A stretch of 64,000 bases of DNA. Source: Octopus bimaculoides. Lineage: Eukaryota. Every line of letters begins with the position of its first letter. Positions within the stretch are counted from its first letter, which is position 1. Made by a program: the position numbers and the translations under genes. The stretch covers positions 129,539,062 through 129,603,061 of the forward strand of contig NC_068982.1 of the NCBI RefSeq assembly GCF_001194135.2, given 5' to 3'. Below the pieces are notes generated by a model. The model searched no databases. It had not been told where the DNA came from and saw only the letters and a list, made by a program, of their open reading frames with translations. This document shows, piece by piece, positions 17,324-61,490 of the stretch.

Positions 17324-17855
17324 TTAAGATATACTGTCCTTTGAGTCATAATATATATTTAAATTTCTTCTTTTGAACTTTTTGTTTTCACCAGGTGAAA
17401 CTAAAGATGTATTAGATCGTTTTGATGTATTTGAAGAACTTCCTGATGAATCAATGGATTCCAATAACTCTGTTGTTTCTATAATTGATTCATTGTTAAC
17501 TTCTGCCTGTGGTATATGATCTTGAGGAGAGGTTGGGTCAAGGCTCTTTTCATTTACATTCTTTAAGTAACTGGTGTGAACATTATCTTCTTCAGAACTA
17601 GAAAATTCTGAATGAACAGTATCTGTGATATTTTGCATACTAATGTTAGAGTTACTGTTGAAACTACTGTCCATATTATTTAGAACTCTATTTGGGTCTG
17701 TTAAATCTAACATATCACAAAGTAAAGTTGTCTGTTCATTGATCTGTATGTCTGAGCCATTTTCACTCTGCACAAAATTTTCTGGGATGGTAAGATCTCC
17801 ACCAAAATCATCGATTATATTTTGTATGTCTTCATCAGTTGCTGTGAAATCATAC
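17324..17855 (-). CDS. DBR1: DBR1 coding exon 8 ([11 protein letters not shown]... S/N/D-rich disordered tail ...[19 protein letters not shown])
   Basis: ttttttatctattggtccccag acceptor; ORF 17324-17926; TAA at 17326-17324. Confidence 0.95.
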
Positions 17856-20800: not shown

Positions 20801-23800
20801 NNNNNNNNNNNNNNNNNNNNNNNNNNNNNNNNNNNNNNNNNNNNNNNNNNNNNNNNNNNNNNNNNNNNNNNNNNNNNNNNNNNNNNNNNNNNNNNNNNNN
20901 NNNNNNNNNNNNNNNNNNNNNNNNNNNNNNNNNNNNNNNNNNNNNNNNNNNNNNNNNNNNNNNNNNNNNNNNNNNNNNNNNNNNNNNNNNNNNNNNNNNN
21001 NNNNNNNNNNNNNNNNNNNNNNNNNNNNNNNNNNNNNNNNNNNNNNNNNNNNNNNNNNNNNNNNNNNNNNNNNNNNNNNNNNNNNNNNNNNNNNNNNNNN
21101 NNNNNNNNNNNNNNNNNNNNNNNNNNNNNNNNNNNNNNNNNNNNNNNNNNNNNNNNNNNNNNNNNNNNNNNNNNNNNNNNNNNNNNNNNNNNNNNNNNNN
21201 NNNNNNNNNNNNNNNNNNNNNNNNNNNAAAAGACACCATTTCGAGCGTGGCCGTTTTCGTGCGGGTGACACGTAAAAGCACCCACTACACTCTCTGAGTG
21301 GTTGGCGTTAGGAAGGGCATCCAGCTGTAGAAACTCTGCCAAATCAGACTGGAGCCTGGTGTTGCCATCCGGTTTCACCAGTACTCAGTCAAATCGTCCA
21401 ACCCATGCTAGCATGGAAAGCGGACGTTAAACGATGATGATGATGAAATAGAATGTTCATATGTCTGATTTTACATCCATCTTTCCAGAGCTTACATGAT
21501 ATATTTAAAACAGAATTATTATGCAATCGTTAGACATCAAACTGCATCACTTCAATATTGAAAAATGTAAAGATCTGCTAGAAATAAAAAACAGGCTATA
21601 CAAAAATATATTACTGAAGTATTGTTCTGCAGCCAGATGCCCTTCCTGCCATTAATTCTTTTTTATCTTTTTAGGAAGGGATGTCTTATTTTACATGTTT
21701 TGCTAGCTTGGGTTGGACGATTTGACTGAGGACTGGTGAAACCAGATGGCTACACCAGGCTCCAATCTGAAGTGAGCAGACAATTTGTTGAAAGTGACAC
21801 CAGTAATACTGCTCGGAGCTTACATAGAGCACAAATGTAAACAAACACAGGCTCACGTGTGTATGTGTGTGTAATATGCATATGACTGGCTTCCTTCAGT
21901 TTCCATCTACTCTAGCCCTAAATTAACTAAAGCCCAAGGTGCCATGCACTGAGATTGAAACCAACCCACAGCTAAGCTTGCCTCTATTATGAGTGAGAAA
22001 TCATTCATCTTTTGAACATGTAAAAATATATAATGGGAAGTGTGTCTGTAAGTTTCAATAAAAAAAGAAAATGTTCGACTTCACCTTAATTCATATGTAT
22101 CTAATAATATTATAAGGTACAGGCATGAACTACACAGTCGAGAAGTTTACATATTTTCAGGTTCAGTCTTACTGTGGTACTTTGAGCAAGTGTTTTCTAC
22201 TCTAGCCTTGGGTTGACTAAAGCCTGGTGAGTGGATCTAGCAGACAGAAACTGGAAGAAGCCTGTAGTGTATATATATATGATGGACTCTACTGTCAAAG
22301 ATGACATATGAGCGTTCAACTTTTGCTGAATGGCCTCCACAAATGTATGTGCTGTACATTAGCTTACTCCTTCCATCAAATCAACATTACCTGAACAGGT
22401 ACACAGTGTACCACACATCAGGTGGTAAAGTGTTTTGGTCAAGAATGCACCACCCAGTCTAGGAATTGAAACTAAGATCTCGCTGTCATGAGTGCAACAC
22501 CCTAACAACTAGGCCATGTGTTGACACTATATATTGACATGAGTGCGTATCTCCTTATCTTGATATGATGTGACAGTTGTGTCAGTGTTGAGCAAGCAGT
22601 GCCCTTCATTTCCAATTCTCTGTAAAAACATCTGGACATGGGAAAATATTACTTTATTTGGAAAAAGTGATTAGTGACAGGAAGGGCATCCAGGCATGGA
22701 AAATCTTTCTCCACAAATTCCCTCTGGCCCATGCAAACATAAAAAAAGGGGACGTTTTAGATGTTGAGATCTATTGTTTGAAGAGTTTAATAATTATTTA
22801 AAACATATTTACCCTATGAGGCACAATAGCAGAAAATTTTACATGTAGATGGGCAGAAAACCAGTATGTTGGTTGAAGGATGTAAAGAAGTTCCTCAGCA
22901 GGTGGACTACCTAATGTGTTAGTCTCAATGTCATTTTCCAGAAATTTCTTCTTTCGAAGGAGATCTTTGAGATCCCCATATTTATGAATTCCACGTGGCC
23001 AATCATGTGATAACATTATATCAACATGCCGCTTGATCTGTAAATAGATACAATTACATAAATTGTTTAGTGACAGCTTTCTATAATGAAATCTTAAAAA
23101 GAAAATTTAAATAAGCAGCAGTTTAAAACATTTTAGTTCTGACATTATTTTTTTTCTTTTCTTTTGAAAGATATAGGAATAAATTTAAAAGCTATCTTAA
23201 TGATCATTCTCTATCTTAAAATTACCTGTTTCATTCGGAAAAATTCTAAGTTCCGAACATGGTAGACAGATCGTTTTGTCTCTTCTGTGTAAGGTGGATG
23301 TTCATAATGGCCTACAATATGAGAATGACAAAATTCATTGATTTTGATCACAAAATGATATATTTAAAACACAATTATCATGCAATAGTTAGACATCAAA
23401 CTGCATCGCTTTAATATAGAAAAATGTAAAGATCTACTAGAAATAAAAACTGTGGATCTCAAATAAATTTAAAGTTTCAGATTCTAACTTTTGAGTCAAG
23501 GTATTAAACTATTGCAATTCATACCATCCTATTGCCTTCTTACTATGAATATTTTCTGTTGTTATCTACTGACATCTTTCATTGTTTCCTAAAAATTCAG
23601 CCCTTGCATTAGACTCAAAATGTACAGTAAAGAGATTACGAAATATACTTAGCAACTTAATACAATCTTACATTATTTGATTCTACTGGCAGCAACCAAT
23701 CTGCCATTGCTGTAGCATTTGCTAACTTAAAATGTTTTATTAACAAATAACTTTTTGAAAAAAAAAACCTGTGATGAAATTCCTCCAAAAGCAGAGTAAT

Positions 23801-26755: not shown

Positions 26756-29358
26756 CAGCACAATAGGCTTCTTTCAACCTCCAGCTAGCACCAAATCCAC
26801 TCACAAGGCTTTGGTCAACCCAACTCTATAGCAGAAGACACTTGCCCAAGGTGCCATGCATTGGGATTGAACCTGGAACCATGTGGTTGGGAAGCAAGTT
26901 TCTTACCAAACAGCCATGCCTGTGCCTATAACTGATATTTCTTTTCTATAACAGAAATTTTTGTTTCATTTCTTTGAGAGGATACATTCAAATAGTTTTC
27001 TTTTTGCTTGCACCAGTGACATAGGCAGAAAGCTAACAGAGCAATTAGACCGGAGTCTTTTGGATACAGATATAGTTTAAGATAGATGGCAGAAGAACTA
27101 TCAACTAACTCCACAATAATTGTGTGAAAAATTCGTGTGTCTTGTGTTGATAAGAAAGAGAGAAAACTAAGGTTGGATTTTCTTTGAGACTGATTTAATT
27201 GTGAATAAAATAATCAATAAAAAGCTAAGAAACCAGAAGGTGCATGGTCTAGTGATTAGGGTGTTGGCACTCGTGATTAGGGTGTTGGCACTCGTGATCA
27301 AGAGATCATAGTTTTGGCTGCCAGACCAGCTGTGCATTATGTTCTTAAGCAAAACACTTCATTTCATCTTGCTTCAGTCCACTCAGCTGTAAATGGGTAA
27401 CCTTGTGATGAATTGGTGTACAAAGGTGAGATGGTGACTCAAGAAAATCACCTGAATGGCGGTCTTGTGAGCCATCTTTTTCTGAATCTGTGATTAAAAG
27501 GGTGAATAGTACCTGTACTGTGAATCCTGGCTGGTTGAGATTGGTTGTTCAACTACGTTGAAGGAGAACGATAAGTTTCCTGTATTGCCAACTAATTCAG
27601 AAAATACAGGCATGGCCATGTGGTTAAGAAATTTGCATTGCAACCATGTGGTTCTGGCTTTGATCCCATGACAGCATCTTTTATGGTAGCTTTAAATTCT
27701 GTGAGTGGAATTTGGTAGCTGGAAACTGTGCAGAATCATGTGTGTATGTATGTGTGTGTTTGTGTGAATATACATATACACACACATATACATTTATATA
27801 TATATATATACTTTTCTACTCTAGGCACGAGACCCAAAATTTTGGGAGAGGGGGCCAGTTGATTAGATCAACCCAGTATGCAACTTGTACTTAATCTATT
27901 GACCCTGAAAGGATAAAAGGCAAAGTCGACGTCGGTGGAATTTGAACTCAGAACATAAAGACAGATGAAATACCGCTAAGCATTTTGCCCGGCATGCTAG
28001 CGATTCTGTTAGCTTGCTGCCTTACATACATACACACATATATATATATTAGTCCCACCCATGCTAGCATGGAAGGCGGATGTTAAAAGAACCTGGAACC
28101 ATGTGGTTGGTAAGCAAGCTACTTACCACACAGCCACTCCTGCACCTATATATATATATATAGACAGCTATGCTACATGGTAGAACATAGGACCCTTTAT
28201 TTTTCAGAGCCTCTGAAACTGGTGGGAGAAAAGGAGGAAGATATTCTTAAATCAGGCCCAAATGTTTGCATCTGAGTGAACTCTTAGTAATGATACTGCA
28301 GGATCAGATGGTGGTGTTAAACTGGGCAATGGATCAAGTCTATAAACCAAAACCTCAGAATGCAAAGGGCTCAAACAAACACCACAAGACATCTTGTTCT
28401 ATGCACTAACAATTCTGTTAATTCCCACAACTTCAGGCTGGTTTTATTTTATCAATTCTGAATGGATGAAACGTAAAGTTAACTTTAGCGAGATTTGAAA
28501 TCTCCCTAAAAAGCTGAAGCAAATGATTCACATGGTGAAAGAGGAAACATGTTACCTAAAAAATACCAACAAACTTCAACAGAACAAGCTACATTTAGTC
28601 AAAATATATTTTGAATAAACTAGCCGCCTTACTTTAATACTGATATCGTCTTGTTATTAAACACAGTATAGTCATAAGAGATATCTTCAGATGAATGCCA
28701 CAGTTAATTTGGCCTTTTGTATTTGCATTCACTATGATGCACTGGTGGTTATTTTATAGTGTACATGAAGGGGAATTTAAAAAAAATCATTGAATGTAAT
28801 TTGGGAAGGAATAATCAGACTAATAAGCAGAATTAGTAGCAAATAATTATACTAATTATATAAGAGAAGCTACACAAATAAGACTAATAACTGATGAGAG
28901 AATGTATTACTTTTATATATATATATATATATTGTTTTGTAAAAATTACTACAAAATAAACACTGTGTGAACATGACAGTTTTCAGAAAAGAGAAAACAG
29001 CATTTCTAATTCACAAAACAAAATGAGATGGTAAAACAGGTGATGCAAGGGAAAATATGTGCTGATGTGTGGTTAATCAGGTTAATTAAATTCATATATG
29101 GAGCTTAATTAAAACAGAATAAATAGGATTTAGGACACTAATTTCTGTTTTTTCTTACTTGTATTTTTGTATTGTAATTCCTAACGACAGAATTCAAGAC
29201 AATTCTTATGATAATTTCTATTAACAGTAAACTGGTTCTAACTGCAAAATGATAGCTAAGTGTATTAGTTCATTAGAATTTATGGCATAGTAAATCAACA
29301 AATTTACTGAGGACTTTATTCTATCTTTTCTAGGTAGCATGAGGTAGATCAAACTTAC

Positions 29359-31700: not shown

Positions 31701-32924
31701 GTAAATTTTCAGAGTAACACCCGCACGATTTTCACTAAGAAAAATCAAAAACTCCGATTTTTTGCGTGGAATCAAGTACCCTGACCTAATATGCTGCAAA
31801 TCCCTTATTTTGGTTCAGAAAGGATGGGGGTGCGAAGAGGGAGACTCTCCCGTCCCGGATTCATTGGAAATTGGGCACTATCATGCTATTAGCTGTCAGA
31901 AGTGAACGTGCTCACTGCCTGCTAGTGAAGTATCTGTTTGTCTGCCTGTCTGCCTGCTGGCCTGTCGATTCTTTGTCTACTGACAGCTAATACCATGACT
32001 GGCCGGAGCGAGCTATATGTCTGTCTGTCTCTCTCTCTATCTATCTATCACTCGAAAGTTCGCGCGTCCGCGCTAGCTAGTCGTGAGTAGAAACCCAAAT
32101 TTAATATAAAAACATATTTCCTGAAATTGCAAATTATTTAAAATATAAAAATATAATTTTCAACAGAGAGAATTTATCAAAATAGAAAACAAATGAAGTT
32201 TGAAGTTTAAAAATAATAGGATCGACCACTCACGACTAGCTAGCGCGGACGCGAGTACCCTTATACTCTGTGTTTTCAAACGCATGGATATAGGTGTCAA
32301 ATTTGTTCCAATAACTTTNNNNNNNNNNNNNNNNNNNNNNNNNNNNNNNNNNNNNNNNNNNNNNNNNNNNNNNNNNNNNNNNNNNNNNNNNNNNNNNNNN
32401 NNNNNNNNNNNNNNNNNNNNNNNNNNNNNNNNNNNNNNNNNNNNNNNNNNNNNNNNNNNNNNNNNNNNNNNNNNNNNNNNNNNNNNNNNNNNNNNNNNNN
32501 NNNNNNNNNNNNNNNNNNNNNNNNNNNNNNNNNNNNNNNNNNNNNNNNNNNNNNNNNNNNNNNNNNNNNNNNNNNNNNNNNNNNNNNNNNNNNNNNNNNN
32601 NNNNNNNNNNNNNNNNNNNNNNNNNNNNNNNNNNNNNNNNNNNNNNNNNNNNNNNNNNNNNNNNNNNNNNNNNNNNNNNNNNNNNNNNNNNNNNNNNNNN
32701 NNNNNNNNNNNNNNNNNNNNNNNNNNNNNATTAGGGTTTTGTAGCATATTAGGATGTCACAGGAATTCATTCAACGAAAAAAATAAAATTTCCAATGATT
32801 CTGAGACGGGGGGGGGGACTTTCGCCCCTCCCTTTCCGAACTAAAGTCAGTGATTTGCTGCATATTAGGAGGTCAGGGTACTTGATTCCATGCAAAAAAT
32901 CCGAGTTTTGCTCTGAAAATTTAC
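31701..32924. mobile_element. Foldback/MITE-like element with long imperfect terminal inverted repeats and two internal hairpins; interrupted by a gap
   Basis: 31701-31872 is the inverse complement of 32787-32924; internal IRs 31881-31899/31980-31998 and 32063-32088/32228-32253. Confidence 0.7.
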
Positions 32925-38718: not shown

Positions 38719-39708
38719 GTATATATATATATATCAATATGTCATAGGTATATATATATACACACACATGCATATCTATATATATTTATATGTCATAAGT
38801 ATACACACACACACACACATACACATACATATATGCATACATCTACCTTCTACTATAGGTGCAAGGCCTGAAATTTTGGTGGAGGGGTATATAATCGATT
38901 ACATCAACCTCAGTGCTCAACTGGTACTTATTTAATTATCCCCGAAAATATGAAAAGCAAAGTTGACCTCAGTGCAATTTGAACTCAGAATATAAAGATG
39001 GATGAAATGTCATTTGGCATTTTGTTCAGTGTGCTAACGACTCTGCCAGCTTGCTACCTTACATATATTATACATATCATCATCATCTTAATATCTAATT
39101 TTCAATATGTATGTATGCATGTATGTATGCATGTATGTATACATGTTTGTATGCATGCATGTGTGTGTGCATGTGTGTCTCTGTGTGTGTCTGAAGCATA
39201 TGTATATGAGTAGCATATTTATGGTGTCATCTGACTTCAGACTGACCACCTGACAGAATAAAATATACCCTATAATTTTATTTTTCTATTTTGACATACT
39301 TCAGTCATTCCTTTATACATACATATATATNNNNNNNNNNNNNNNNNNNNNNNNNNNNNNNNNNNNNNNNNNNNNNNNNNNNNNNNNNNNNNNNNNNNNN
39401 NNNNNNNNNNNNNNNNNNNNNNNNNNNNNNNNNNNNNNNNNNNNNNNNNNNNNNNNNNNNNNNNNNNNNNNNNNNNNNNNNNNNNNNNNNNNNNNNNNNN
39501 NNNNNNNNNNNNNNNNNNNNNNNNNNNNNNNNNNNNNNNNNNNNNNNNNNNNNNNNNNNNNNNNNNNNNNNNNNNNNNNNNNNNNNNNNNNNNNNNNNNN
39601 NNNNNNNNNNNNNNNNNNNNNNNNNNNNNNNNNNNNNNNNNNNNNNNNNNNNNNNNNNNNNNNNNNNNNNNNNNNNNNNNNNNNNNNNNNNNNNNNNNNN
39701 NNNNNNNN

Positions 39709-41663: not shown

Positions 41664-42464
41664 TATAAACAAGTAAGCATATAGGTACAAAACCAGGTGG
41701 TAAAATTAGCACTTAAACACCAAAAGTAAAGTAAAATACTATTTTATTAAAGCTGAAAAAACTTAGGTCATTGTAAAAATATGCTTGCCATCTCATTCTT
41801 ATTTCTTTATTGCCCACAAGGGGCTAAACATAAGGACAGATAAAGGGATTAAGTCGATTATGTCGACCCCAGTGCGTAACTGGTACTTAATTCATCGACC
41901 CCGAAAAGATGAAAGGCAAAGTCGACCTCAGCAGAACTTGAACTCAGAACGCAACGGCAGATGAAACACCGCTAAGCATTTTGCCCGGCACGCTAACGTT
42001 TCTGCCAGCTCACTTGCCATCTCATTCTGCTGATGAAATCTTCAGTTTTCTCTATAAGATCTTTAAAGTGCAGTTTATTTGATGGAACTGAAATGCTCTT
42101 TATCGAAAGATTCAGCAAGTATAGTTTCATTTTCCAGCTGTTTTTTCTCCCTTTTGAGGAGAGTCACTCGAACTAACAAAAGGTGCAATATACACATATA
42201 CAAATATTTACATACACACACATATTTACATACACAGGGCCTACCTTGAGATTTTTCCAAACAGGTGTATTGGACACCTGTTTCAGTAGAATACTCTTCA
42301 CATTCACTGGACCTCTCATCACCCGACATTTTTTTTTATTGGGTAGGGTGGGGGGAATACTCAAAAGATAAAGTTTGTGGTACAAAAGTGGCATGAGTTG
42401 ATGGACTGAAGGAAGTCCACATATATATATGCACTCACTATATATATATATATATATTGCCATG

Positions 42465-42660: not shown

Positions 42661-43729
42661 TATATATATATACACACACATACTCACACGCACACATTCA
42701 CATACCTCCCTTTTACATGCACACACATATACTCACACAGAGATGAAATGTTGATTTTTTTTCATCCCTTCCTTCCTTATTCATCTATCACCCCTTCCTT
42801 TCTCCATTGCTATTACTTTCTCTCACTCACTCTCAGTCAGGGCTATTACTCTCACTACTTCTCCTTCACTGAATTACTATTTTCTCTCCTCTCTCTTCAC
42901 TTATACTAGTCTTTCTCCTACTCCACCCTACTCCTACTCTGTGATTTTGGACAAATATGTATTTTCATTTTCCCCCTTCTTGAAAATTTGCCATGCAATG
43001 AAAGCTAGTTAGAAACCCTTTTTAACCCTTCTTACACACATCTATATTAAAATATGTTTTCAGTTTAGCATTCTGCCTTTTTATTATTATTATTTTTTCT
43101 TTTCCTATTATCTCTCCACGTGCGGTTAACACAACCCCAACATTTACATACAAATATATTAAAACACTATGTTCATTATTATATTAGGAGATGACATAAG
43201 TATAAACAGGCAAACAACAGGTATGAGGTTAGATTATGACATTTATATATCTAAACATGAAGGTTGAGTCATTACACGAATACAGATCATATGAAAGAAA
43301 GAAAAAGTGTGCAGATAGTCTCTGAAAGCTGTTTCAATATGTTGATCTACAGATGGTGCATTTTTCTGCAAACAATCAACAGTCAACCTTATAGTAGCAA
43401 TCTATTCCATCATCGGAGGGAGAATGAGCTGAATTCTATATTACCTGTGCGCGCATGTGTGTGTGTGTGTGCGTGTGTGTATAATATACACACACAGACA
43501 CATGTGACTGTGCACACATATACATACACTTACATATATTGCTAAATGTCTTATTAGATATGTAGACAGATATGCTATAAATTTTAATAAACAGAAATAT
43601 TAAGGGAAAAGAGGACTTGTATATAGTAAAATATATGTTTGGAATATATATATTATTTATACAATACTATATTATAGACTTATTCAAGTTGCTTTTACCA
43701 TTCAGTTTCAAATATAAGAATTGGGGAAC

Positions 43730-43767
<38 letters not shown>

Positions 43768-44171
43768 CATGTGTATGTATGTGTATATGTTTGCATGCAT
43801 GTATGTATTATATATTGTGTATCAAAACACATCTAGTTTTGTGGTCAATGTACACATTTGCCATGCGAGTATTAAAACAGATAATAGATGTTTAAGATGT
43901 CTTGGTTAATTGTTTGATACTGAAACTTTAACTGCTATTATTAAATGGATTTGGTCTCAAATTTTACAGTTTATAGCTGTTGGTGCAATGATTGACACTA
44001 TGTTTGTGCATCTTGGTGTATGTATAGAAGAAAATAATATTGATACATATTTGAATTTTGCATTCTGTTCTTTTCTGAAGTTCTTGAATATATAGTATTG
44101 ACCAGTATGTTGCCAGCATCAGATAGCATTGGTTTCTGTAAAAATAAAAATAAAAACTGAATATTATAACC

Positions 44172-44224
<53 letters not shown>

Positions 44225-44926
44225 ATGTATGTATGTATGTATGTATGTATGTAGGTATGGGTGTATGGGTGTATGTTTGGATGTCTGTGTAGATAGATAG
44301 ACATACAGACAGACAGGTAGATAGATAAATAGATAGATAGATAGATATGAATGACAAAAAAGAAGTTAGGCGCAGGAGTGGCTGTGTGGTAAGTAGCTTG
44401 CTTACCAGCCACATGGTTCCGGGTTCAGTTTCACTGCATGGCACCTTGGGCAAGTGTCTTCTACTATAGCCTCGGGCCGACCAAAGCCTTGTGAGTGGAT
44501 TTAGTGGATGGAAACTGAAAGAAGCCCGTCGAATATATGTATATGTATATATGTGTGTATATGTTTGTCCCCCCAACATCGCTTGACAACTGGTACTGAT
44601 GTGTTTGCATTCCCGTAAAGTAGCAGTTCAGCAAAAGAGACCGATAGAATAAGTACTAGGCTTCCAAAGAATAAGTCCTGGAGTCGATTTGCTCGACTAA
44701 AGGCAGTGCTCCAGCATGGCCGCAGTCAAATGACTGAAACAAGTAAAAGAGAGAAAGAGTATGTCATTTTCATTAGCTTACTGCTGTTTCAGCCACATGG
44801 AACTGTACACTAACTAACAGTTGAGTACCACTATGACATCTTATAACTTCATATATATATATATAGTAGAATAATAAAAAGGAAGTTCTTGGCACAGTAT
44901 TATATATTTGAAAAAAATGAGTTGAG

Positions 44927-45631
44927 AGTAGCTTTTGCGGGGAGCGGGGATGATTTTTATTTTAATAATGTTTACAGTGAGTTACTCTGTTTACAAGTTT
45001 CAAGCTTCATATAACTGCTTTCAAACTGAAAAATATATGTTTTACTGGTTGTTTAAATAGAAAAAAAATTCAGATAACAAAAAATATATATAAAAAAATA
45101 CAAAAGTATATGTGTAGAAGAAGAAGAAGAAGAAGAAGAAGGGGGAAATGGAATAAAGCTAAAAGTAAAAATAAATATAAAAATAGTAATCAAGAACATG
45201 GGGGGAAAGAAAGTTAAGTACATCAAGAATAAAGAAATGGAATATTTTGGAGTGGTCAAAATATTCCATTTCTTTATTCTTGATGTACTTAACTCTCTCC
45301 TTCCCCCATATTCTCAGTCACTATTTTTATATTTATTTTTACTTTTAGTTTTATTCCATTTCCCCCTTCTTCTTCTTCTTCTTCTTCTTCTTCTTCTTCT
45401 TCTTCTTCTTTCTTTCTTTCTTTCTTTCTTTATTTCTTTCTTTCTTTCTTTCTTCTACACATGTGCTTTTGTATTTTATTTTTATATATATTTTCTGCTA
45501 TTTAAGCAACCAGTAAAACATACATTTTTCAGTTTGAAAACAATCATTTGAAGCTTGAAACTCATAAACAGAGTAACTCACTGCAAACATTATTAAAATA
45601 AAAATCATCCCCACTCCCTGCAAAAGCTACT
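44927..45631. repeat. 705-bp near-perfect palindrome (foldback/MITE-like)
   Basis: Arms mirror each other from agtagcttttgc to gcaaaagctact, including (GAA)n versus (TTC)n; loop gagtggt at 45250-45256. Confidence 0.9.
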
Positions 45632-47175
45632 ATGAATAGAGTTGTTTTTGTTCAAACTATGCTACATACATTTAGATAGCATGTCTATTTATTTGTTCAC
45701 AATGTATTACATAATGATATTATATAATGTGAATTACATAACCAAACCATTTCTTGAGGCATCTTGAACAGTTGACAGTTAAAATTGGTTTGTATGTGTA
45801 TCTATTCTTTTATTCTTTTACTTGTTTCAGTTATTTAACTGTGGCCATGCTGGAGCACTGCCTTTAGTTGAACAAATCGATCCCTAGGCTTATTCTTTGT
45901 AAGCTTGTTACTAATTCTATTGGCCTCTTTGGCTGAACTGCTAAGTTATCTATATAATCATTTAATGTCAGCTACTCTGCAGGCATGGGTTGGCTGGTTC
46001 AACAGGACCTGATGAACTGGAGAACTATGTCAGGCTCCAATGTTTACTTAGCATGATTTCTATAACTGGAACCTCTTCATAATGCCAACCATTTTACAGA
46101 GTGGACTGGGTGCTTTTTTTTGTGACATTAGCACTAGTGAAGATTGTTTCAGGCTAAAGTGCCTGAAATGGTTTCTACAACTGAGGGAGAATAGAAGAGA
46201 GAGCATGCAATGATTCTAAGTAGGGGATGTAAGTGAGAGGAGAGGACCAGATTTATAGTTACAATTGGATGGCTGTGGAGGGAGTGACAGTAAGCATTAA
46301 GTAGTTAGTAGTATGGCAAAGAACAAGGGAGAGTGAAGGGATCAGTGTCAAGGGTTATTGAGAAAAATGGGAGGACAGAGTAGGAAGGTGATAGGGTGAA
46401 TTGTTAGGTGGGGAAAAGAGGAAATGGGGGATGTAATAGACTAGGGTGGAGAGGAATTATAAGAGAGTCATACTCTCTAGGTTCATATTGATTTCTTTTA
46501 TTGGTGGAAGGTCATAAATTTGTCAGGTAGGATTTTAATTGAGTAGACCTTGTATGGTAAATATCTATTAATCCTTGTGAAGAAAGGCAAATTCAACAGT
46601 TGTTATGCTTGTTAGATTAAATGATTTTGTATGTGAATTTAATATTTTTGTCATTATCATATCTATTTAACTTTAGCACATTATAATGAAAGTTATTACT
46701 TTGGCTCAAAACCACAAATTTTGAAAGAAGATTGCAGTCAATCTGATTGATCTAATATTTGACTGCTTTTTCTCAATATCAATCTTAGAAAGAAAGTAAA
46801 GTCAACCATGTTAAGGTTTGAATTTAGCAATATAAAGCAACTAAAGGCTATAAGATATTCAGTTTAACTTTCTACAGTTTCTACGAACCACTGTTTTCTG
46901 CTGTAGTGCTTGTCTAAAATACCTTATAATGTTTTGCTATATTTCATTATATTCTGAGTTCAGATTTTTGGCGGGATTTTATAAGGGTTATTTTTGCATT
47001 TCATCTTGGGATCAATTTAATGGGCTATTATTACTTTTTCCATACAAATATCCGATTCCATCTCAGAATTAGAAATTATGATTTTGAGAATACAATAGTT
47101 TTAATTCAGATTTCTTTAGCAGAACAATAAAGAATAATTTACTGGTGATGTACACTGATATACTTTAATGTTGTT

Positions 47176-47207
47176 TTAGTTCAATGCCGCAATAACAAAT
47201 CTAAAGA
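47176..47207 (-). CDS. Orphan glycoprotein exon 4 (VFRFVIAALN*)
   Basis: ttttttttctttcag acceptor after a 60-nt intron; in-frame TAA at 47178-47176. Confidence 0.7.
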
Positions 47208-50200
47208 CTGAAAGAAAAAAAACTGCAGAATAAATTATGAATTTCTTTCAAGATCTTTCATACATACCAAGGGAAACATTGCCTGCAGCTGCTTTGGAAA
47301 CATTATTCTTCATCAATGTTGGGTGGTTTGCTTGAGTAGTTATTTCAAGAGACAATATTTTCCTTAGTGTCAGACTCACTAAATTCAAGTTACTCATGAC
47401 AGGAGAACTCCCATTATGTTTGGCCACAGTGGTATTTGTTGAAACATTGGTCTCATTCTTTGCACCAGTGTCTCTCTCTGCATTAGTCTTATTTGACACT
47501 GTTGCATTTGCCTTGTTGTTCTTACATCTAATTTCATCTGCAGCAGAAGAGTTGGAAATTTCAGCTGCACTCCTGACTGCATACTGAGAACCATTTACTT
47601 TTTTGATCTTACTTTTTGTGTTTGGTGTGACAGCTTCAGCACTATCATTTCTCACAGCAGTACCATTTATAGTTTGTTGATCATTGTTTATAGTTTCATT
47701 GGTAGCGGTCTTGTTTGGCATGTCACCCCTCTTGCTGAGGTCTGTTAATTCTTCCTGGAAACTTTCTGCTTCGAGTGCTACAAAGTTTTTGACTGTGGAT
47801 GATTCTGGAAGATTATCAAGGTTTTGGTCAGTGTCATTTGTACGTCGGGTCATTGAAATATTTTGCCCTTGGCCTGTACTGGTAGAGTTAGGACCCTTTT
47901 CTACATTTCCTCTATTGGCAATATTTGAATCATTCACTGTTCTTATTTCCCTTGTTATTTTTCCATCTGAAGAATTAACATTTTTCATAGTTGTTTCTTC
48001 ACTATTTTTTACCGCTGTGCCATTTTCTCCTGTTGTATTTCCCCTAGGGGACAGATTCACAAGTTGATGATCTTCAGTTTTTACACTACTATTTAAAGTT
48101 TCTTGTGTGTTATCGTTTATGTGTTCGGTTGAGTTCCTTGATGTATTTACAGCTGTATCATTTGTAACTTCTAAATTATTTCCAGTAGAAACATTGCTTT
48201 CTGGAGCTTTGTCTTCAGTCTCAAAATTGAAACGTTGGGTATCTGTCACAGGACTCACATTTTTATCGTTAGAAACAGTAGAGGTTTTACTGTAATTGAC
48301 AGTTTTGTTTGGGTGTGAGACAGAGCTATTGCTTGAGTCATCAGCTTGCACCACAGAGTTATTAGATTGCTGGATATTTTTTGCTTGTAATGTTATCTTT
48401 GAAGAGTCATTCTGAGCTGCCTTGGATGATGGTTGATCTTGAATAATTACCATATTCAAAGTAGCATTTTCTGAGACTGAAAATAAAAATTATAGAATTT
48501 AAAACTGTAAGCAGCAATCACAAAGAAATGTTAATTATTGGAATAGTCAAGAACTCTGGTGAATTTAGAAAGCTAAGTGGCAACAGTAATAATATTTGTT
48601 TCATGTGAAATCATTTGTTTCTATTGTTCTATTTATAAAATATTTTGAAGCATTAAATTTCATATTTCTGAGGCAAGGGATTTCTGTCACTGTACCAGCA
48701 ATATCTATAAGTTTAATGTAATGAAATAGTTGAAATCATTTAGATGTTCAATGTAATGAAATATATAAATGAAACAAACATGGTCATGTGGTTAGGAAGT
48801 TTGCTTCTCAATCATGCAGCTTCAGGTTCAGTCCTATTGTGCCACACCTTTTGCAAGTGTCTTCTACTATATCCTCAGACTGACCAATGCCTTGCAAGGG
48901 CATTTGATAGGCAGAAACTGAAAAAAGCCTGTGATATGTGTGCCTGTGTGTGTGTATACAAGTGCATGTGTATGTGTGCACATGCATGTATGAATGTTTA
49001 CAAAACTACACTGAGCCATGACTTTTACCATTTGTGTTTGGACTGCAAATGGTGATGTTTGTTGGCATTTCCAATCAACAAATTGTCTGCTAGCTCTGTT
49101 TCCAAAAAAGAAATACTTCAATTGTGATTGAAAGTGCATTTGGTCATAAGAATCCTGCCTCTATTTCCTCTGTCTAAGCCATGCCAGTATGGTCATTAAA
49201 TGATTCAAACAAATAAGTAAATGAATGAAATCCTTTAACATTAAAGTTAATTTTCTATTTTGATTTTGTTAAAAGGGGGGGAAAAAAAAAGCAGCAAAAA
49301 AAACTTTGATTTTGTCATAAGATTAAGTTCACAATATCAGAGTGTGAAGCTTGTGCAAGAAGTAAGAAGTTTGTTGCTGCATGGTTGTAATATTGAAAGA
49401 AGATTTTTAAGGCGGTGAGCTGGCAGAAATGTTAGCATGCCAGGTGAAATGCTAAGAGGTATTTCATCTGCCAGTATTTTGTTCTGAGTTCAAATTCCGC
49501 CGAGGTCGACTTTGCCCTTCATCCTTTCAGGGTTGATTAAATAAGTCCCAGTTATGCACTGGGGTCAATGTAATCAACTTATCCCTTTGTCTGATTTTGT
49601 TTGTCCCCGCTATGTTTATCCCCCTGTGGGCAATAAAGAAATAAATAATGAAAGAAGATCATCTGCAGAGAACTGAAAGAAAGAAATCAAGTATGAGGCA
49701 TTGAATATGCAACTTTGAGCTAGAAGAAGTTAAGCACAAGTTCTCAGGAGATAGACTGAGTAGGAAATTTTTTAAGTAATGTGAACAGAATTTGTTGCTG
49801 TACTTGTCTGGATATATAATAAAAATATACAACACCTCAGTGAAAAAGAATTGAGCTAAACCTAGAACATGGAAAGGAGTGAAAAAATTGGGTGTCTGAC
49901 TTGGTCATAGAATTACTTCTGGCCTTCAATCTCAGGCTTAAAAATATCTAAATGTTCACCTATGGTGCATTGATAACTTTTAAGAAACAACTATGTACAG
50001 TTACTTGCATTAACTGGTGATTAAAATTCTTAGATTTAGTTAAAAATCTATGGAAAGCCAAAAATCTGTCAAAGCAGTGCTACTCAAAGTGGTAGTCCAT
50101 GGACCAGTGCTGGTCTGTGAGCCATCAGCTGCTAGTATGCGGTGAGTTTTCAGAAAAGAAAGAAAAATTATAAAATACTTATGTAATATTGTATTATTTG

Positions 50201-52403
50201 TTTAGAAACATAAGATAAAAAAAGATAAAATTTAAAAAAATTGTCAACTTATATTATATTCATTATATATTGTTTCCAATATAAATTAATATTACTAAGA
50301 AGTATTACTGGTCCCTGGCACATTGGAAAAAAAAAGAAAAAACTGCTGGTACGCCACATCAGGTAGTTTGAGAAGCACTGTGTTAAAGCCCTTTATTCAA
50401 CTACCAGCTCAAAGATTCCCACTTGCCAAAATTTTGATGGGCCTTTATAAGAGTAAAGACCCCTTGAAAGTCACCTAATTTTACCTTTCTTTAACTTAAC
50501 TCAGAAACTTGAAACATGAAATTTGTTTTAGAATCCCTTAAATTCAACTTATATTTCATCACTGACAACCATACAAATATTTTATTACAATTGTTTCTTG
50601 AAAGGCTTATAAAACTAGAAACTATTCTAAACTGTCCATATTTCTTGCATTGGCAGAAATTTGTTGAGGGAGAGTAAAGTCTACTGAAATAACTCCGAAC
50701 TAGTGATTTGGTGGAATCATTGGAGTACTGGATAAAATGCCTTGTGAAATTTGTTTTGACTTTCTGAACCCTGAGTTCAAACTCCGCTGAGATCAACTTT
50801 GCCTTTCATTCTTTCAGATTAAATAAAAAAAGTAGTGGATTGGCGGAAGTGTTAGAATGTTGGTCCAGATACCTTGTGGTATTTGTTCTGGCTCTTTATG
50901 TTCTGAGTTTGAATCCTTCCACAATCCCTTTGATATTTAATATCATCACCTGACACAATGGATGCCTTTAGAGGAATTTACCCTCCATTTCAAAGATATT
51001 TTTCTCCCTCCCTCTCACCACATTTGCTGGCCCTGACTGAAAAAGAAAATTCACCAATTGAAAACTCTATAAATGGAAAATGCTCTGATGAGTACTTACA
51101 GTCCTTGGTGCACATAAGATAAGGGACATTTCCGTCATTGTCATCAACACATTTACAGTTGTAGGGAGAGCCATTAAATGACAATGTTTTGTTTTGTTGG
51201 GTTAGTATAGAAACATTCTTGTAGTAACAATCTGCAATGGAAATTCATCTCACTTAACACATATATCTGCATAACTACTAATATAAATACCTGCATACCT
51301 ACAAACCTACCTTCCTCTCACTGCATTGATCTACCCAGCCAGTTATATATCATATCTTTTGTCTCTCTCTTCCTACCTTTGTATATCATTACCTACCAAA
51401 CTATGCTTCTAAATTTTTATTTACAAGCAAATAAGAATCAGAGTGCAGGGACATTAATAATGATTTGTGTTGATAAAAATCATTTAACAAAGTTCACAAT
51501 ATGGTTTAGTTTTAATGCCAAGGAAGGCATGAGTTCTAACATTTTGAGCAAAGCCATTTCTTCAGGAAGAGAAATATTTAAATGTTCAAGATATCACTGA
51601 GCTAATAGGTTTTACATAGTTTTATCTAAAGAATGGCTTTCTTTGAAATGTAAGTACTCATATTTCCTTATGGCATATAAACTTACATATTTCTTTAACA
51701 ATTTATCCAGATTTTGATACTATTTACCTATTTATCTAGTTTCTTCTTTAACTATTTATTTGCCAACCTGTTATCTACATAAATTCATATGTATTTATCT
51801 CCATCCCTCTCTGTTTACCATCTTAACAGATGTACAATCCTATCTGGTTATGTGTCCTGGGCAAGACATTAAATGCATCTGGTGGTAAAGTCCCAGCAAG
51901 GGAGTTCAGGAGTTTTACAAAAAGTGTGGAGATGGGAAATGAGTGAGAAAAAGAGAGGTAGGCAACACCAACAATACAAGAGAGGAAGAAAGGGGGCAGT
52001 CAGAGATGAGTAGTCAGTGCAGAACAGTAGAATAGTAATGAGGATACAGTAGACAGGAGAAGGATGAGGGAGATAATAAGTTGTTGGGCAGGTCACAGGA
52101 ATGAGTGGGGAAGAGTAAGTAGTCAATACAGTATTGAAACAAAAACTGTTTTTAGTTCTTCACACTCTAAAAGCCTTGATACTTGTAAAAAGTTCAGTTT
52201 GATATAGTTATTATACCAGGGGAAAAAATGGTAACAAAGAAAGAAAATTATATCTCAAATCAGTTTATAAACAGACTGAAAAAGTTAGTTGTAAATTTTT
52301 GCTGCTAGCATAGAAATGTTATAAATTTAGAATCTTACTTACTTTTATCAGCAGAGCAAATTGACAGCAATAAGATGAAAATAATTTGAAAAGTAGTTTC
52401 CAT
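47176..52403 (-). CDS. Uncharacterized secreted/GPI-anchored-like glycoprotein: complement join(52343-52403,51019-51231,47268-48476,47176-47207), 1515 nt, 504 aa
   Basis: Four exons joined by phase-1 GT-AG introns give one open frame: signal peptide METTFQIIFILLLSICSA, a 6-Cys module, a 403-codon S/T/N-rich exon (ORF 47248-48459) and a hydrophobic end VSLVFRFVIAALN*. Confidence 0.85.
47268..48476 (-). CDS. Orphan glycoprotein exon 3 (S/T/N-rich stalk)
   Basis: atttttattttcag acceptor, G|gtatgt donor; 1209 nt open, phase 1-1. Confidence 0.9.
50075..50380 (+). mobile_element. hAT (Charlie-like) MITE
   Basis: TIRs cagtgctactcaaa / tttgagaagcactg; 8-bp TSD tgtcaaag (50067-50074) / tgttaaag (50381-50388). 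Confidence 0.85.
51019..51231 (-). CDS. Orphan glycoprotein exon 2 (CYYKNVSILTQQNKTLSFNGSPYNCKCVDDNDGNVPYLMCTKDCKYSSEHFPFIEFSIGEFSFSVRASKC)
   Basis: atttccattgcag acceptor, G|gtgaga donor; 213 nt, phase 1-1; 6 Cys with a CxC motif. Confidence 0.8.
52343..52403 (-). CDS. Orphan glycoprotein exon 1 (signal peptide METTFQIIFILLLSICSADK); exon starts at 52409
   Basis: cattttatttattag acceptor, A|gtaagt donor, phase 1. Confidence 0.8.
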
Positions 52404-52819
52404 CCTGTTCTAATAAATAAAATGAAATGTCAATTGATGATATCTATTAAAGAAAAACAAAATACATTGAAATACAATTTAAATGGCTTTTGCCTGTGAT
52501 GTTTCTAGAAAATAATTGAGATGAAGGAGTGACAGCCTACAGATGATGGACTGTATTTAGTGGTTACTGCAAGACATTAGAAGTAAGGGGGCACAGTACA
52601 GCTGACAAGAAGAGGAGAAGAAACAAGTTAGAGGGGGTCTAAGTAGAGATGACACAAGACCAGCTAGTCCCAAAGAACAGAAACCACTATAGTAGCAGTA
52701 CTGGAAAAGTTGCAGAGAAGACACAGAACATATGTAAACCCAAGGCTGGAATGTGTTGGTGACAAGTATTTTAATAGCAATCAGTCAGTTGATCTTTTTT
52801 CTATTAATGCAGTCTAGAA

Positions 52820-52860
<41 letters not shown>

Positions 52861-53497
52861 CAGCAGCAGCACTGCTCCAAATAGAGAAGTAGTATTCCAT
52901 TGAGCTTTTGGATAGTATTAATAACTGTCGGAGAACTGAAATAGTGATGGAGGCAGTACAGTAATGACAGTAGTGTGGTATTAGTGATGGTATGGTATGG
53001 TGTAAGAATGGTGGAGATGTGGTACCATCAATAGAGTGCTAAACAAAATACCATTAGTATATTGATATAAACTACCTTTAGTTTCTTTCAGCTGTTTTGC
53101 AGCATACTACATGGGAAGAGGTTATTAAAAATTAAGATAGCTTTAAACTTTTTAATCTTGTCCACACCATGACAAAGAAAGAAGAATTATATGGATATAA
53201 ACTCTATTTTGTCTTCTCCTTAATAAAGATGTGCCAAAATTGACTTCACCTTTCATCTTTTGGGTTTGATAAGATAAGTACCAGTTGAGTAATGGGGTCA
53301 AGTAATCAACTCACTCCCTCCTTTAAAACTGCTGGCCTTGTGCCAAAATTAGAACTAGAAAGAGTTGATAAAGGAAATGGAGTGAGTAGCAAAAGAATTT
53401 CACAAATATTTTTGATAGGAGTCTGATGCTTGCCAGTTTGAGAGCAACTGATGTATATGGTGTATATATAGCATTCATAAGAACATGTCAGAGATTG

Positions 53498-53863
53498 TAC
53501 ATTATTTATATTATTTACATTCAACGGATATTTGTCCTCATCTTGTTTGTTGTTAGCACAACATTTCGGCTGATATACTCTCCAGCCTTCTTCAGGTGTC
53601 TTGGGGAAATTTCGAACCTGGGTTCTCATTCCGAAGGTATTTTTCAATGTTATTATTATTATTGTTGTTATTGTTGTTATTATTGTTTAGGTCACTGCTT
53701 GGAATCGAACTCGGAATCTTGGGGTTAGTAGCTTGCACTCTTAACCACACTTAACCGCTCTTAAACGTTGTGTTAACAACAAACAAGATGAGGACAAATA
53801 TCCATCGAATGTAAATAATGTAAATAATGTACATAATTCCTCATCTCTTAAATATAGAACAGT
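53498..53863 (-). mobile_element. tRNA-headed SINE-like element with a Penelope-type tail, hammerhead motif and inverted 3'-end duplication
   Basis: Minus strand: A-box-like gtggttaagagtg (53748), B-box gagttcgattcc (53712-53701), (AAT/AAC)n, hammerhead, tail. Inverted tail copy at 53763-53863. 13-bp TSD atgtcagagattg (53485-53497) / atgtcagaaattg (53864-53876). Confidence 0.75.
53555..53600 (-). ncRNA. Minimal type I hammerhead ribozyme
   Basis: GACAC-CUGAAGA-A-GGCUGG/AGAGUAUA/UCAGCC-GAA-AUGU-U-GUGCU; the inverted copy at 53764-53774 reads AACGUUGUGUU, restoring the ACGU palindrome and stem I. Confidence 0.7.
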
Positions 53864-60600: not shown

Positions 60601-61490
60601 CATGGTCTAATCAATAAGTATCCAGATTGTTGTTGCCGTAGTAACGAAGCTGAAGCACCCACAGTGAAGCCACTTGGCATAGATTGACCTTGAACACTGT
60701 TGGGCATGTGCACTAAGTTTTAATGTTCTTGTTCACTTCCACTGTTTACAGCAGTGCCTGGAAGGAAGGTGTGTAGCGTGTGATTATTGCACTGACCATG
60801 ATAGAGAAAGTTGAGCAGAGAATTTGCATTCAATTTTGCCAAAGGTTTGGCAATACCTGCTCAGAGGCCTACATAAAGTTTTCATCGTTTTCAACACAAT
60901 CAAGGAGATCTTGTGCAACTGAAACCTGAGTGTCTTTTTGGTCAGCTGAAAGCAGTTTTAGCACAAACTTGGCAGATATGCATCTCGTCCCCAAATCTTC
61001 TGTGATAATGGACTGAACTGAACCATAACTAATCTGCACATCCTCTGATAACTCACAGATAGTGATTTGATGATTTCCTCTCACAGCTTCACGCACATCT
61101 GCAATGTTTTTCTCAGTTCTGCTGGTTGCGGGTCTCCCAGAATGTTCGTCAATATCGACATTTTTTCTGCCACCTTGGAAATGTCTGAAGCACTTATACA
61201 CTTGTATGTGGCTCATACACTCCTCTCCATACACTTTCTGCAACTTTGAATAGGCCTCTGATCAGGTATCGCCGTGACAGCTTTCTCTGTCATGGTCAAT
61301 GTGACGATCACACAACACTACACATCTTCCTTCCAAGCACTACTGTAAACAGTGGAAGTGAGCTAGAATGTTAAAACTTAATGCATATGCACAGCAGTGT
61401 TCAAGGTCAATCTGTACCAAGTGGCTTCACTTTACATGCTTTAGCTTTGTTATTATACTAACAATCCGGATACTTATTGATCAGACCTTG
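60601..61490 (-). mobile_element. Rearranged mariner derivative with two 5' ends; truncated transposase ORF 60869-61243
   Basis: TIR (ta)caaggtctgatcaataagtatccgg at the right end and a degenerate copy at the left. ORF has mariner HTH features (HSGRPATS, ITICELSEDVQISYGSVQSII, SAKFVLKLL for WVPRLL). Confidence 0.85.

Follow-up and report, generated by a model that had tools for sequence, protein, structure and literature searches.

Mucins and related glycoproteins with PTS domains pair a signal peptide with a long, disordered Ser/Thr-rich region beside a small Cys-containing domain, and their glycans are expected to make them behave as molecular bottle brushes. Ser/Thr-rich stalk proteins anchored by glycosylphosphatidylinositol (GPI) likewise begin with a signal peptide and carry a small head on a long, glycosylated stalk. 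Among proteins rich in N-glycosylation sequons (N-x-S/T, where x is not P), the HIV-1 envelope protein gp120 carries 5.02 sequons per 100 amino acids, a density termed “extreme selection” for sequons (PMC2920574). More generally, the ratio of observed to expected sequons exceeds one in proteins of the secretory pathway and in regions that face the lumen or the exterior, whereas cytosol-facing regions and soluble nonsecretory proteins are at expectation (PMC5562741). Here we compare with these systems the gene LOC106875936 of Octopus bimaculoides, whose product carries the RefSeq name “uncharacterized protein.” The gene lies on the minus strand of a 64,000-nucleotide stretch of contig NC_068982.1 (positions 129,539,062 to 129,603,061; hereafter the window), in AT-rich DNA (31-43% GC) with assembly gaps. 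On balance, we consider it probable that this is an Octopus-restricted gene with four coding exons whose product is a soluble, secreted, hyper-N-glycosylated glycoprotein with an optional two-disulfide head.

RefSeq gives two O. bimaculoides isoforms: X1 (XP_014779740.1, 472 amino acids) and X2 (XP_014779741.1, 428 amino acids), the latter skipping exon 2, which preserves the frame because this exon is 132 nucleotides long. The Octopus sinensis isoforms X1 and X2 have 473 and 429 amino acids, respectively, and Octopus vulgaris is represented by two models. Common to the annotated models of all three species are exon 1, a short exon 2 (or its skipping), exon 3, and a terminal exon ending in ETNA/VI. 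The coding parts in the window are as follows.

52343-52403, minus strand: coding exon 1, 61 nt, with the ATG at 52403 and the phase-1 donor AAA/gtaagt; encodes METTFQIIFILLLSICSADK.
51100-51231, minus strand: coding exon 2 (four-Cys module), 132 nt, a phase 1-1 cassette with the donor ACT/gtaagt; encodes NCYYKNVSILTQQNKTLSFNGSPYNCKCVDDNDGNVPYLMCTKD.
47268-48476, minus strand: coding exon 3, 1209 nt, phase 1-1; encodes about 402 amino acids rich in N, S, and T.
44119-44135, minus strand: coding part of the terminal exon, with the acceptor ttttacag/AA; encodes (E)TNAI, then TGA.

These parts sum to the X1 coding sequence (61+132+1209+17 = 1419 nt, or 472 codons and a stop). The gene is present once in the window, as judged by self-BLAST and by tblastn of the window. 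An earlier sequence-only reading of the same DNA had proposed four phase-1 exons encoding 504 amino acids, and its candidate exons, when translated, give precisely that product. Exon 1, the exon 2 acceptor at 51231, exon 3, and the phase-1 introns of that proposal coincide with the annotation, while its exon 2 donor and its exon 4 do not, and the annotated products are 472 and 428 amino acids long rather than 504. All introns are in phase 1 and every donor and acceptor is canonical, including the candidate sites of the earlier proposal. The locus had also been called an unrecognized orphan. It is in fact already annotated, albeit as uncharacterized, and what holds of the term “orphan” is that the gene is taxonomically restricted and without a characterized product.

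The hydrophobic N-terminal leader has 18 residues; read on the minus strand from the ATG at 52403, it is METTFQIIFILLLSICSA followed by DK. It forms the top-scoring 19-residue Kyte-Doolittle hydropathy window of the whole protein and has small residues at positions -3 and -1 (C-S-A). Exon 1 therefore probably encodes a signal peptide, as had been proposed, and cleavage is predicted to follow SICSA. The same N-terminus is found in RefSeq X1 and X2 and in the O. sinensis and O. vulgaris orthologues. One O. vulgaris model (P0003) has an extra 52 amino acids N-terminal to METTF, which would bury the signal peptide. Such an extension is ruled out in O. bimaculoides because an in-frame TAG lies three codons 5′ of the ATG, and the O. 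vulgaris extension is probably an annotation artefact of choosing the longest open reading frame (ORF).

The density of sequons is far above chance. The mature protein has 37 sequons among 454 residues, 34 in exon 3 and 3 in exon 2, or one per 12.3 residues (8.1 per 100 amino acids), and an earlier count made by hand proved exact. When the residues of exon 3 were shuffled 20,000 times, 14.5±3.1 sequons were obtained with a maximum of 27, such that the observed 34 represent a 2.3-fold excess (z 6.4). Control motifs in the same exon occur near the shuffle expectation ([ST]xN, 12; NxxS/T, 12; N[ST], 13). For comparison, we used the O. sinensis locus and genomic Logan contigs from a more distant octopod (hereafter the Logan species). 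The excess recurs in both, with 39 sequons against 18.2 expected in O. sinensis (z 6.1) and 33 against 15.3 in the Logan species (z 5.4), and the reversed motif [ST]xN occurs only 12-17 times across the three species.

The placement of the sequons is also conserved, with 24 occupying the same alignment column in all three species. Their Asn residues are identical in 31 of 34 cases, compared to 226 of 333 other residues (p=0.003), whereas the middle residue matches in just 17 of 34 and the S/T is retained. In the Logan species, 26 of the 34 sequons are kept, while simulations of neutral substitution leave 19.5±2.7 (p about 0.012). Judged from these alignments, the sequons are under selection. 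A leader together with an excess of sequons over expectation is the pattern of secretory N-glycoproteins (PMC5562741), and these data bear out the earlier proposal of a secreted and extremely sequon-dense protein.

The likeness to gp120 is instructive in two respects. Sequons exceed the compositional expectation in both proteins, by 3.8-fold in gp120 and 2.3-fold in the octopus protein, and in both cases individual sites turn over while the total count is held (PMC2920574). The two proteins are nonetheless unrelated. The viral envelope protein gp120 is folded and has 5.0 sequons per 100 amino acids, while the octopus protein, with 8.1, is predicted to be secreted and disordered.

The similarity to mucins likewise ends with the overall architecture. 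Exon 3 is composed of 15% N, 12% S, 12% T, and 2.9% P (S+T 23%) and is near charge-neutral, in agreement with the stretch of about 400 S/T/N-rich residues noted before. Proline is scarce, and Tandem Repeats Finder, when applied to positions 47100-48600, gave only one trivial 19-nt repeat and nothing significant. The PTS repeats by which mucins are defined are absent, and the contrast with O-glycan mucin stalks that the sequence-only reading had drawn holds up. Moreover, Asn is the most common residue of the octopus protein, and a Pfam scan revealed none of the VWD, C8, and CK oligomerization domains of mucins. The over-representation of N-x-S/T points to a dominance of N-linked rather than O-linked glycans. 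An AlphaFold2 model of the full-length protein has a predicted local distance difference test score (pLDDT) of 28, with values of 23-31 across exon 3, and is too poor for a fold search. The exon 3 region is therefore predicted to be disordered.

Exon 3 of other octopods can contain a 69-nt in-frame segment, VNASSNVTSSFSKKETESKSDNQ, which has two sequons. The O. sinensis genome, the O. vulgaris models, and the Logan species all have this segment (13412-13476 of L001, the locus from O. sinensis). It is absent from the O. bimaculoides genome, where the corresponding site is at 48060/48061 on the minus strand, inside exon 3. The O. sinensis copy has GT…AG at its ends and the flanks GTTAAT/GTGAAT. 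The RefSeq isoforms of this species splice it out in the manner of a mini-intron, whereas the O. vulgaris annotation keeps it. The segment could be an exitron, or it could reflect an annotation artefact combined with a slippage deletion.

That exon 3 is protein-coding is clear from its pattern of change. It is a 403-codon ORF in DNA of 35% GC and is open in three species, and in simulations of neutral divergence a mean of 3.7 stops arose and the ORF stayed open in 2.2% of trials. All indels between the species are multiples of 3. We therefore consider it extremely improbable that the locus is noncoding, or a pseudogene with a chance ORF. The lack of recognizable domains would suit that explanation and nothing else does, given a 1.2-kb ORF in AT-rich DNA, its persistence against neutral expectation, the strictly in-frame indels, the canonical splice sites, the near-invariant coding sequence of exon 2, and the fact that two pipelines annotate the locus as coding.

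Exon 2 is the most striking case of this constraint. It is identical to its O. sinensis counterpart at 131 of 132 nucleotides, compared to about 90-92% for the surrounding introns, and differs from that of the Logan species at ~7 of 132 positions against a background of 15-18%. The one difference from O. sinensis is synonymous, whereas neutral divergence in this region predicts about 11-13 differences. Conservation that extends to synonymous sites is typical of alternatively spliced exons, and the near-absence of synonymous change fits a regulated cassette exon. A known RNA does not account for this conservation, since Rfam and tRNA (ARAGORN) scans of positions 43000-53500 gave no match.

The boundary of this conservation bears on a competing gene model, namely that of the earlier reading, in which the product would be a 504-amino-acid cell-surface glycoprotein with a six-Cys head and a GPI tether provided by the tail NNVSKAAAGNVSLVFRFVIAALN. 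Two segments distinguish it from the annotated gene.

51019-51099, minus strand: proposed extension of exon 2, 81 nt, CKYSSEHFPFIEFSIGEFSFSVRASKC, carrying Cys 5 and Cys 6.
47176-47207, minus strand: proposed exon 4, 32 nt, VFRFVIAALN and a stop, with the acceptor ttttttttctttcag/TCT.

Both alternative sites look usable in O. bimaculoides (GTG/gtgaga for the long exon 2 and ttttctttcag/ for exon 4) and keep phase 1, and no annotated isoform in three species uses either one. For exon 2, a conserved and perfect GTAAGT donor at 51100/51099 precedes the extension, and it is the site at which X1 of O. bimaculoides, X1 of O. sinensis, and both O. vulgaris models are spliced. Comparison of O. bimaculoides, O. 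sinensis, and the Logan species reveals that nucleotide conservation falls, and substitutions and indels set in, right after this donor. In O. sinensis, insertions of 6 nt and 5 nt shift the frame of the extension and the region of the GTGAGA donor is deleted, and none of the annotated isoforms contains the 81-nt extension. On the basis of the conserved GTAAGT donor and the O. sinensis frameshift and donor loss, Cys 5 and Cys 6 are attributed to read-through, and the extension is most likely intron sequence outside the annotated mRNA. The module then has four Cys residues, with the spacing C-x23-CxC-x12-C, in place of the 70-residue, six-Cys module suggested before. One caveat is that the Logan species retains the frame of the extension, a Cys, and the GTGAGA donor.

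The frame past the exon 2 donor is open for 27-40 codons in all three species (51019-51099 on the minus strand; 20-310 of the Logan contig L004), and in two of the three it ends at a Cys followed by a phase-1 GTGAGA donor. This GTGAGA site may serve as an alternative 5′ splice site of minor use or may have arisen by chance.

Similar considerations apply to the proposed exon 4. The annotated terminal exon at 44119-44135 sits 3.1 kb beyond the interval covered by the sequence-only reading. The annotated C-terminus is short and hydrophilic (…GNVSLETNAI), and it reads ETNAI in models P0001 and P0005 and ETNVI in P0002, P0003, P0006, and P0007. The terminal exon and ~500 nt of 3′ untranslated region following it are well conserved with O. 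sinensis. This conserved untranslated region runs toward about 43590, and the first AATAAA/ATTAAA past the stop is at 43588. A compound microsatellite, (AC)n(GTAT)n, lies at 44175-44250, which is 40-115 nt upstream (in the gene sense) of the terminal-exon acceptor, and its length differs in O. sinensis.

The alternative exon 4 is not without attractive features, since an ATTAAA lies 6 nt past its stop and the sequence around it is conserved in three species. However, its stop codon TAA is CAA in both O. sinensis and the Logan species, such that the tail would differ among species and would run into unrelated sequence in these two. In addition, the candidate tail LVFRFVIAALN has only 10 hydrophobic residues, which are interrupted by Arg. 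A GPI signal combines a small omega residue and a polar spacer with an unbroken hydrophobic run of about 12-20 residues, for which the candidate tail is too short. The proposed exon 4 is most likely part of the last intron. A hydropathy scan of the annotated protein revealed no hydrophobic segment besides the signal peptide, and the product is accordingly expected to be soluble. Thus, the octopus protein differs from GPI-anchored stalk proteins in ending with ETNAI and in having no hydrophobic tail, and the suggestion of anchoring at the cell surface falls together with the exon on which it depended. Considering both segments, we judge the 504-amino-acid, GPI-tethered model to be very unlikely, even when the open frame, Cys, and donor kept by the Logan species are counted in its favor.

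The four-Cys module itself spans 44 residues and includes three sequons. Its spacing resembles that of the fibronectin type I (FN1) family (PF00039) and of the structurally related N-terminal subdomain of VWC, both of which have about 40-45 residues and four Cys in the order C…CxC…C. In FN1, this order goes with disulfides 1-3 and 2-4 and with a fold of one two-stranded sheet and one antiparallel sheet of three strands. A single-sequence AlphaFold2 model of the module is all-beta, and its CxC lies within one strand and its final Cys within the adjacent one. In Foldseek searches of the PDB with this model, pairs of FN1 modules ranked first and recurred (3gxe_B, 3ejh_B, 2cg6, 3cal_C, and 2cku), with TMq values of 0.69 for 3gxe_B (prob 0.90), 0.66 for 3cal_C, and 0.75 for 2cku (rmsd 1.9 Å), although the associated E-values are not significant.

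At the level of sequence, no such relationship is detected. A Pfam scan of the full protein gave no families at E≤10, and a PDB sequence search with the module returned a single chance-level match (E 0.34). We also built a reference alignment of nine human fibronectin FN1 modules, each an exact match to fibronectin chains in the PDB. The hhalign probability between the octopus module and these modules is 1.2%, with only the CxC core aligned. The human modules have the spacing C-x(21-25)-CxC-x(6-9)-C, compared to C-x(23)-CxC-x(12)-C in octopus, where the last loop (C3-C4) is longer. Furthermore, the octopus module lacks the FN1 Tyr of the first hairpin, the GDTW Trp (Trp/Phe/Tyr), and the Gly-x-Gly after CxC, which are (near-)invariant columns of the human alignment. 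We conclude that the cysteine spacing and the predicted fold are FN1-like, and that membership of the module in the FN1 family is not demonstrated. The description “loosely VWC/FN1-like” given earlier is apt for the cysteine spacing and for the best, nonsignificant match of the predicted fold, and finds no FN1 signal in the sequence. Symmetric phase 1-1 exons, such as the one encoding the octopus module, are typical of shuffled extracellular modules. FN1 modules are regarded as restricted to chordates, and convergence, or a generic stack of two-disulfide beta-hairpins, is therefore as likely as homology. The module is constrained and probably folded.

An exhaustive HMMER scan of 1.84 billion representatives with the 43-residue module returned only Octopus proteins besides matches to filamin, SprB, Big_12, and Ig-repeat proteins. 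We rejected the latter as nonhomologous, their scores being inflated by the addition of many repeats of a short strand motif resembling NGSPF.C.C. The module strand FNGSPYNCKCVDD (51160-51200, minus strand) is 60% identical over 15 residues to the filamin-repeat motif INGSPFACKCID, and this likeness drove a repeat-summed E of 1e-42 to a filamin protein with 16 repeats. We judge the resemblance to filamin to be a convergent beta-strand motif rather than a sign of kinship.

The full protein gave an equally narrow result. Among 5.8 billion protein clusters, a single-sequence search matched four proteins, each of them from Octopus, and a profile search of the same clusters with the four orthologues yielded no new relatives, again with Octopus only. 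The protein thus looks lineage-specific, with homologues found in Octopus alone in these searches, and the single-sequence, profile, and HMMER results agree with the earlier proposal on this point. Database pipelines have given the octopus protein the names of Dentin sialophosphoprotein (DSPP) and of the Dictyostelium protein DDB_G0286901. These share a low-complexity composition rich in N, S, and D, and DSPP is also secreted and carries an RGD. We reject the identity because the names are automatic UniRef-type labels that reflect compositional likeness only, and because the searches returned Octopus orthologues alone. Specifically, the octopus sequence lacks the (DSS)n repeats of DSPP and has no detectable homology to it. 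No literature was found on this gene by its LOC identifier, its protein accessions, or SRA runs, and a literature search combining “Dentin sialophosphoprotein” and “octopus” gave nothing relevant.

Several points weigh against the interpretation that we favor, and some of them would suit a different explanation, in which the sequons of a fast-drifting, taxonomically restricted, low-complexity protein simply follow from its richness in N, S, and T in an AT-rich genome, with no function that depends on glycans. Exon 3 evolves fast, and its dN/dS ratio (nonsynonymous to synonymous divergence) of 0.63-0.71 shows that constraint on the stalk is weak. Its dS is 0.085 in the comparison with O. sinensis and 0.17 in that with the Logan species. 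Sequon Asn residues are not significantly better conserved than non-sequon Asn residues (31/34 vs 21/26, p=0.28). The nucleotide identity of exon 3 to O. sinensis, at 93.6%, is not above that of the introns, and the lack of homologues found outside Octopus would also be expected of a drifting sequence. Other reservations concern the individual parts of our interpretation. The splice isoforms are taken from third-party annotation, and signal-peptide cleavage and sequon occupancy are predictions read from the sequence. Neither of two proteome studies of O. vulgaris skin mucus lists the protein's accessions in its supplementary tables, which is a weak negative. For the module, the AlphaFold2 model described above has a pLDDT of 82 and the other four models range from 61 to 69, and the Foldseek E-values are 0.7-1.9, as expected because the query has 43 residues.

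Nevertheless, we regard drift without a role for glycans as rather unlikely. Composition alone yields fewer than half of the sequons observed, and 0 of 20,000 shuffles rose above 27. The excess occurs in three species and is not seen for reversed or shifted motifs. The sequons are retained above the neutral level in a manner that keeps N and S/T while leaving x free, and the ORF and its reading frame are preserved.

Some segments of the stalk are better conserved than the rest of exon 3, and an RGD tripeptide lies next to one of them.

48160-48252, minus strand: conserved island in exon 3.
47854-47895, minus strand: conserved island in exon 3.
47743-47823, minus strand: conserved island NLDNLPESSTVKNFVALEAESFQEELT in exon 3, adjoining the RGD.
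47722-47730, minus strand: RGD tripeptide, X1 residues 314-316, in the disordered region just past NLDNLPESSTVKNFVALEAESFQEELT.
47311-47394, minus strand: conserved C-terminal island SNLNLVSLTLRKILSLEITTQANHPTLM in exon 3.

The C-terminal island has a three-species identity of 0.73-0.87 in 15-residue windows and contains the sole helix predicted in exon 3, at low confidence (AlphaFold2, O. sinensis residues 428-444). The RGD has a chance expectation of 0.03 and is shared by O. bimaculoides, O. sinensis, and O. vulgaris. Together with the FN1-like predicted fold of the module, it raises the possibility that the protein is an adhesive ligand of the extracellular matrix, in which the RGD would bind integrins and the head would bind matrix or collagen, as in fibronectin and the RGD-bearing SIBLING proteins. 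However, the Logan species has RDD at this position (RGD in three of four species), sequons flank the tripeptide and their glycans could mask it, and FN1 membership fails at the sequence level. An adhesive function of this kind consequently seems to us quite unlikely.

For the secreted, hyper-N-glycosylated protein that we favor, the following sequence of events can be envisioned. The leader would direct the protein to the endoplasmic reticulum and would be cut after SICSA. While the chain is unfolded, oligosaccharyltransferase would then glycosylate a large share of its 37 sequons, giving a bottle-brush that owes most of its mass and hydration to N-linked and not to O-linked glycans. The four-Cys module would form two disulfides within an FN1-like beta fold and may serve as a binding or attachment head, which alternative splicing would include (X1) or omit (X2). 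The conserved islands of the stalk, and possibly the RGD, may act as interaction motifs. The likely role of such a product is that of a hydrated coating, or of a lubricating or matrix-associated secreted glycoprotein. A bolder version would have Octopus make a secreted, lineage-specific “N-mucin,” comprising a nonrepetitive, disordered chain with about 35 selected N-glycans (8 per 100 amino acids, above the density of gp120) and an alternatively spliced head whose FN1-like fold arose outside chordates by convergence or descends from very distant homology. This specific combination is conceivable, and we hold it to be unlikely as a whole.

Other features were noted elsewhere in the window. Within the last intron of the gene, a 1.3-kb segment (44621-45943) matches its own reverse complement at about 71%, forming a large foldback or inverted repeat. 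Dispersed repeats of about 170-230 bp that look like short interspersed elements occur in introns 2 and 1 (49400-49645 and 50700-50900, respectively), with related copies at 41799-42013, 27857-28024, 19595-19709, and 38897-39069. On the minus strand at 17324-17926, a 200-residue ORF rich in S, N, and D has a sub-threshold match to the C-terminal domain of DBR1 (E 0.0075) and is probably an exon of a neighboring gene for this lariat debranching enzyme. A 124-residue ORF at 60869-61243, also on the minus strand, has a sub-threshold match to the Mos1 transposase helix-turn-helix domain (HTH_48, E 0.04) and is probably the remnant of a mariner-type transposon. The assembly gaps (runs of N) are located at 20578-21227, 32319-32729, and 39331-39708, and these yield spurious long ORFs in the ORF list.

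This analysis corrects the gene model and quantifies a conserved enrichment of sequons in a gene of Octopus. If the sequons are occupied, the protein would be among the most densely N-glycosylated animal proteins described, and would represent a natural mucin-like material in which N-glycans take the leading part. Such a protein would be relevant to the glycobiology of molluscs, to secreted biomaterials, and to the origin of taxonomically restricted genes in cephalopods. Finding an FN1-like fold in a mollusc would, moreover, bear on the confinement of this module to chordates.

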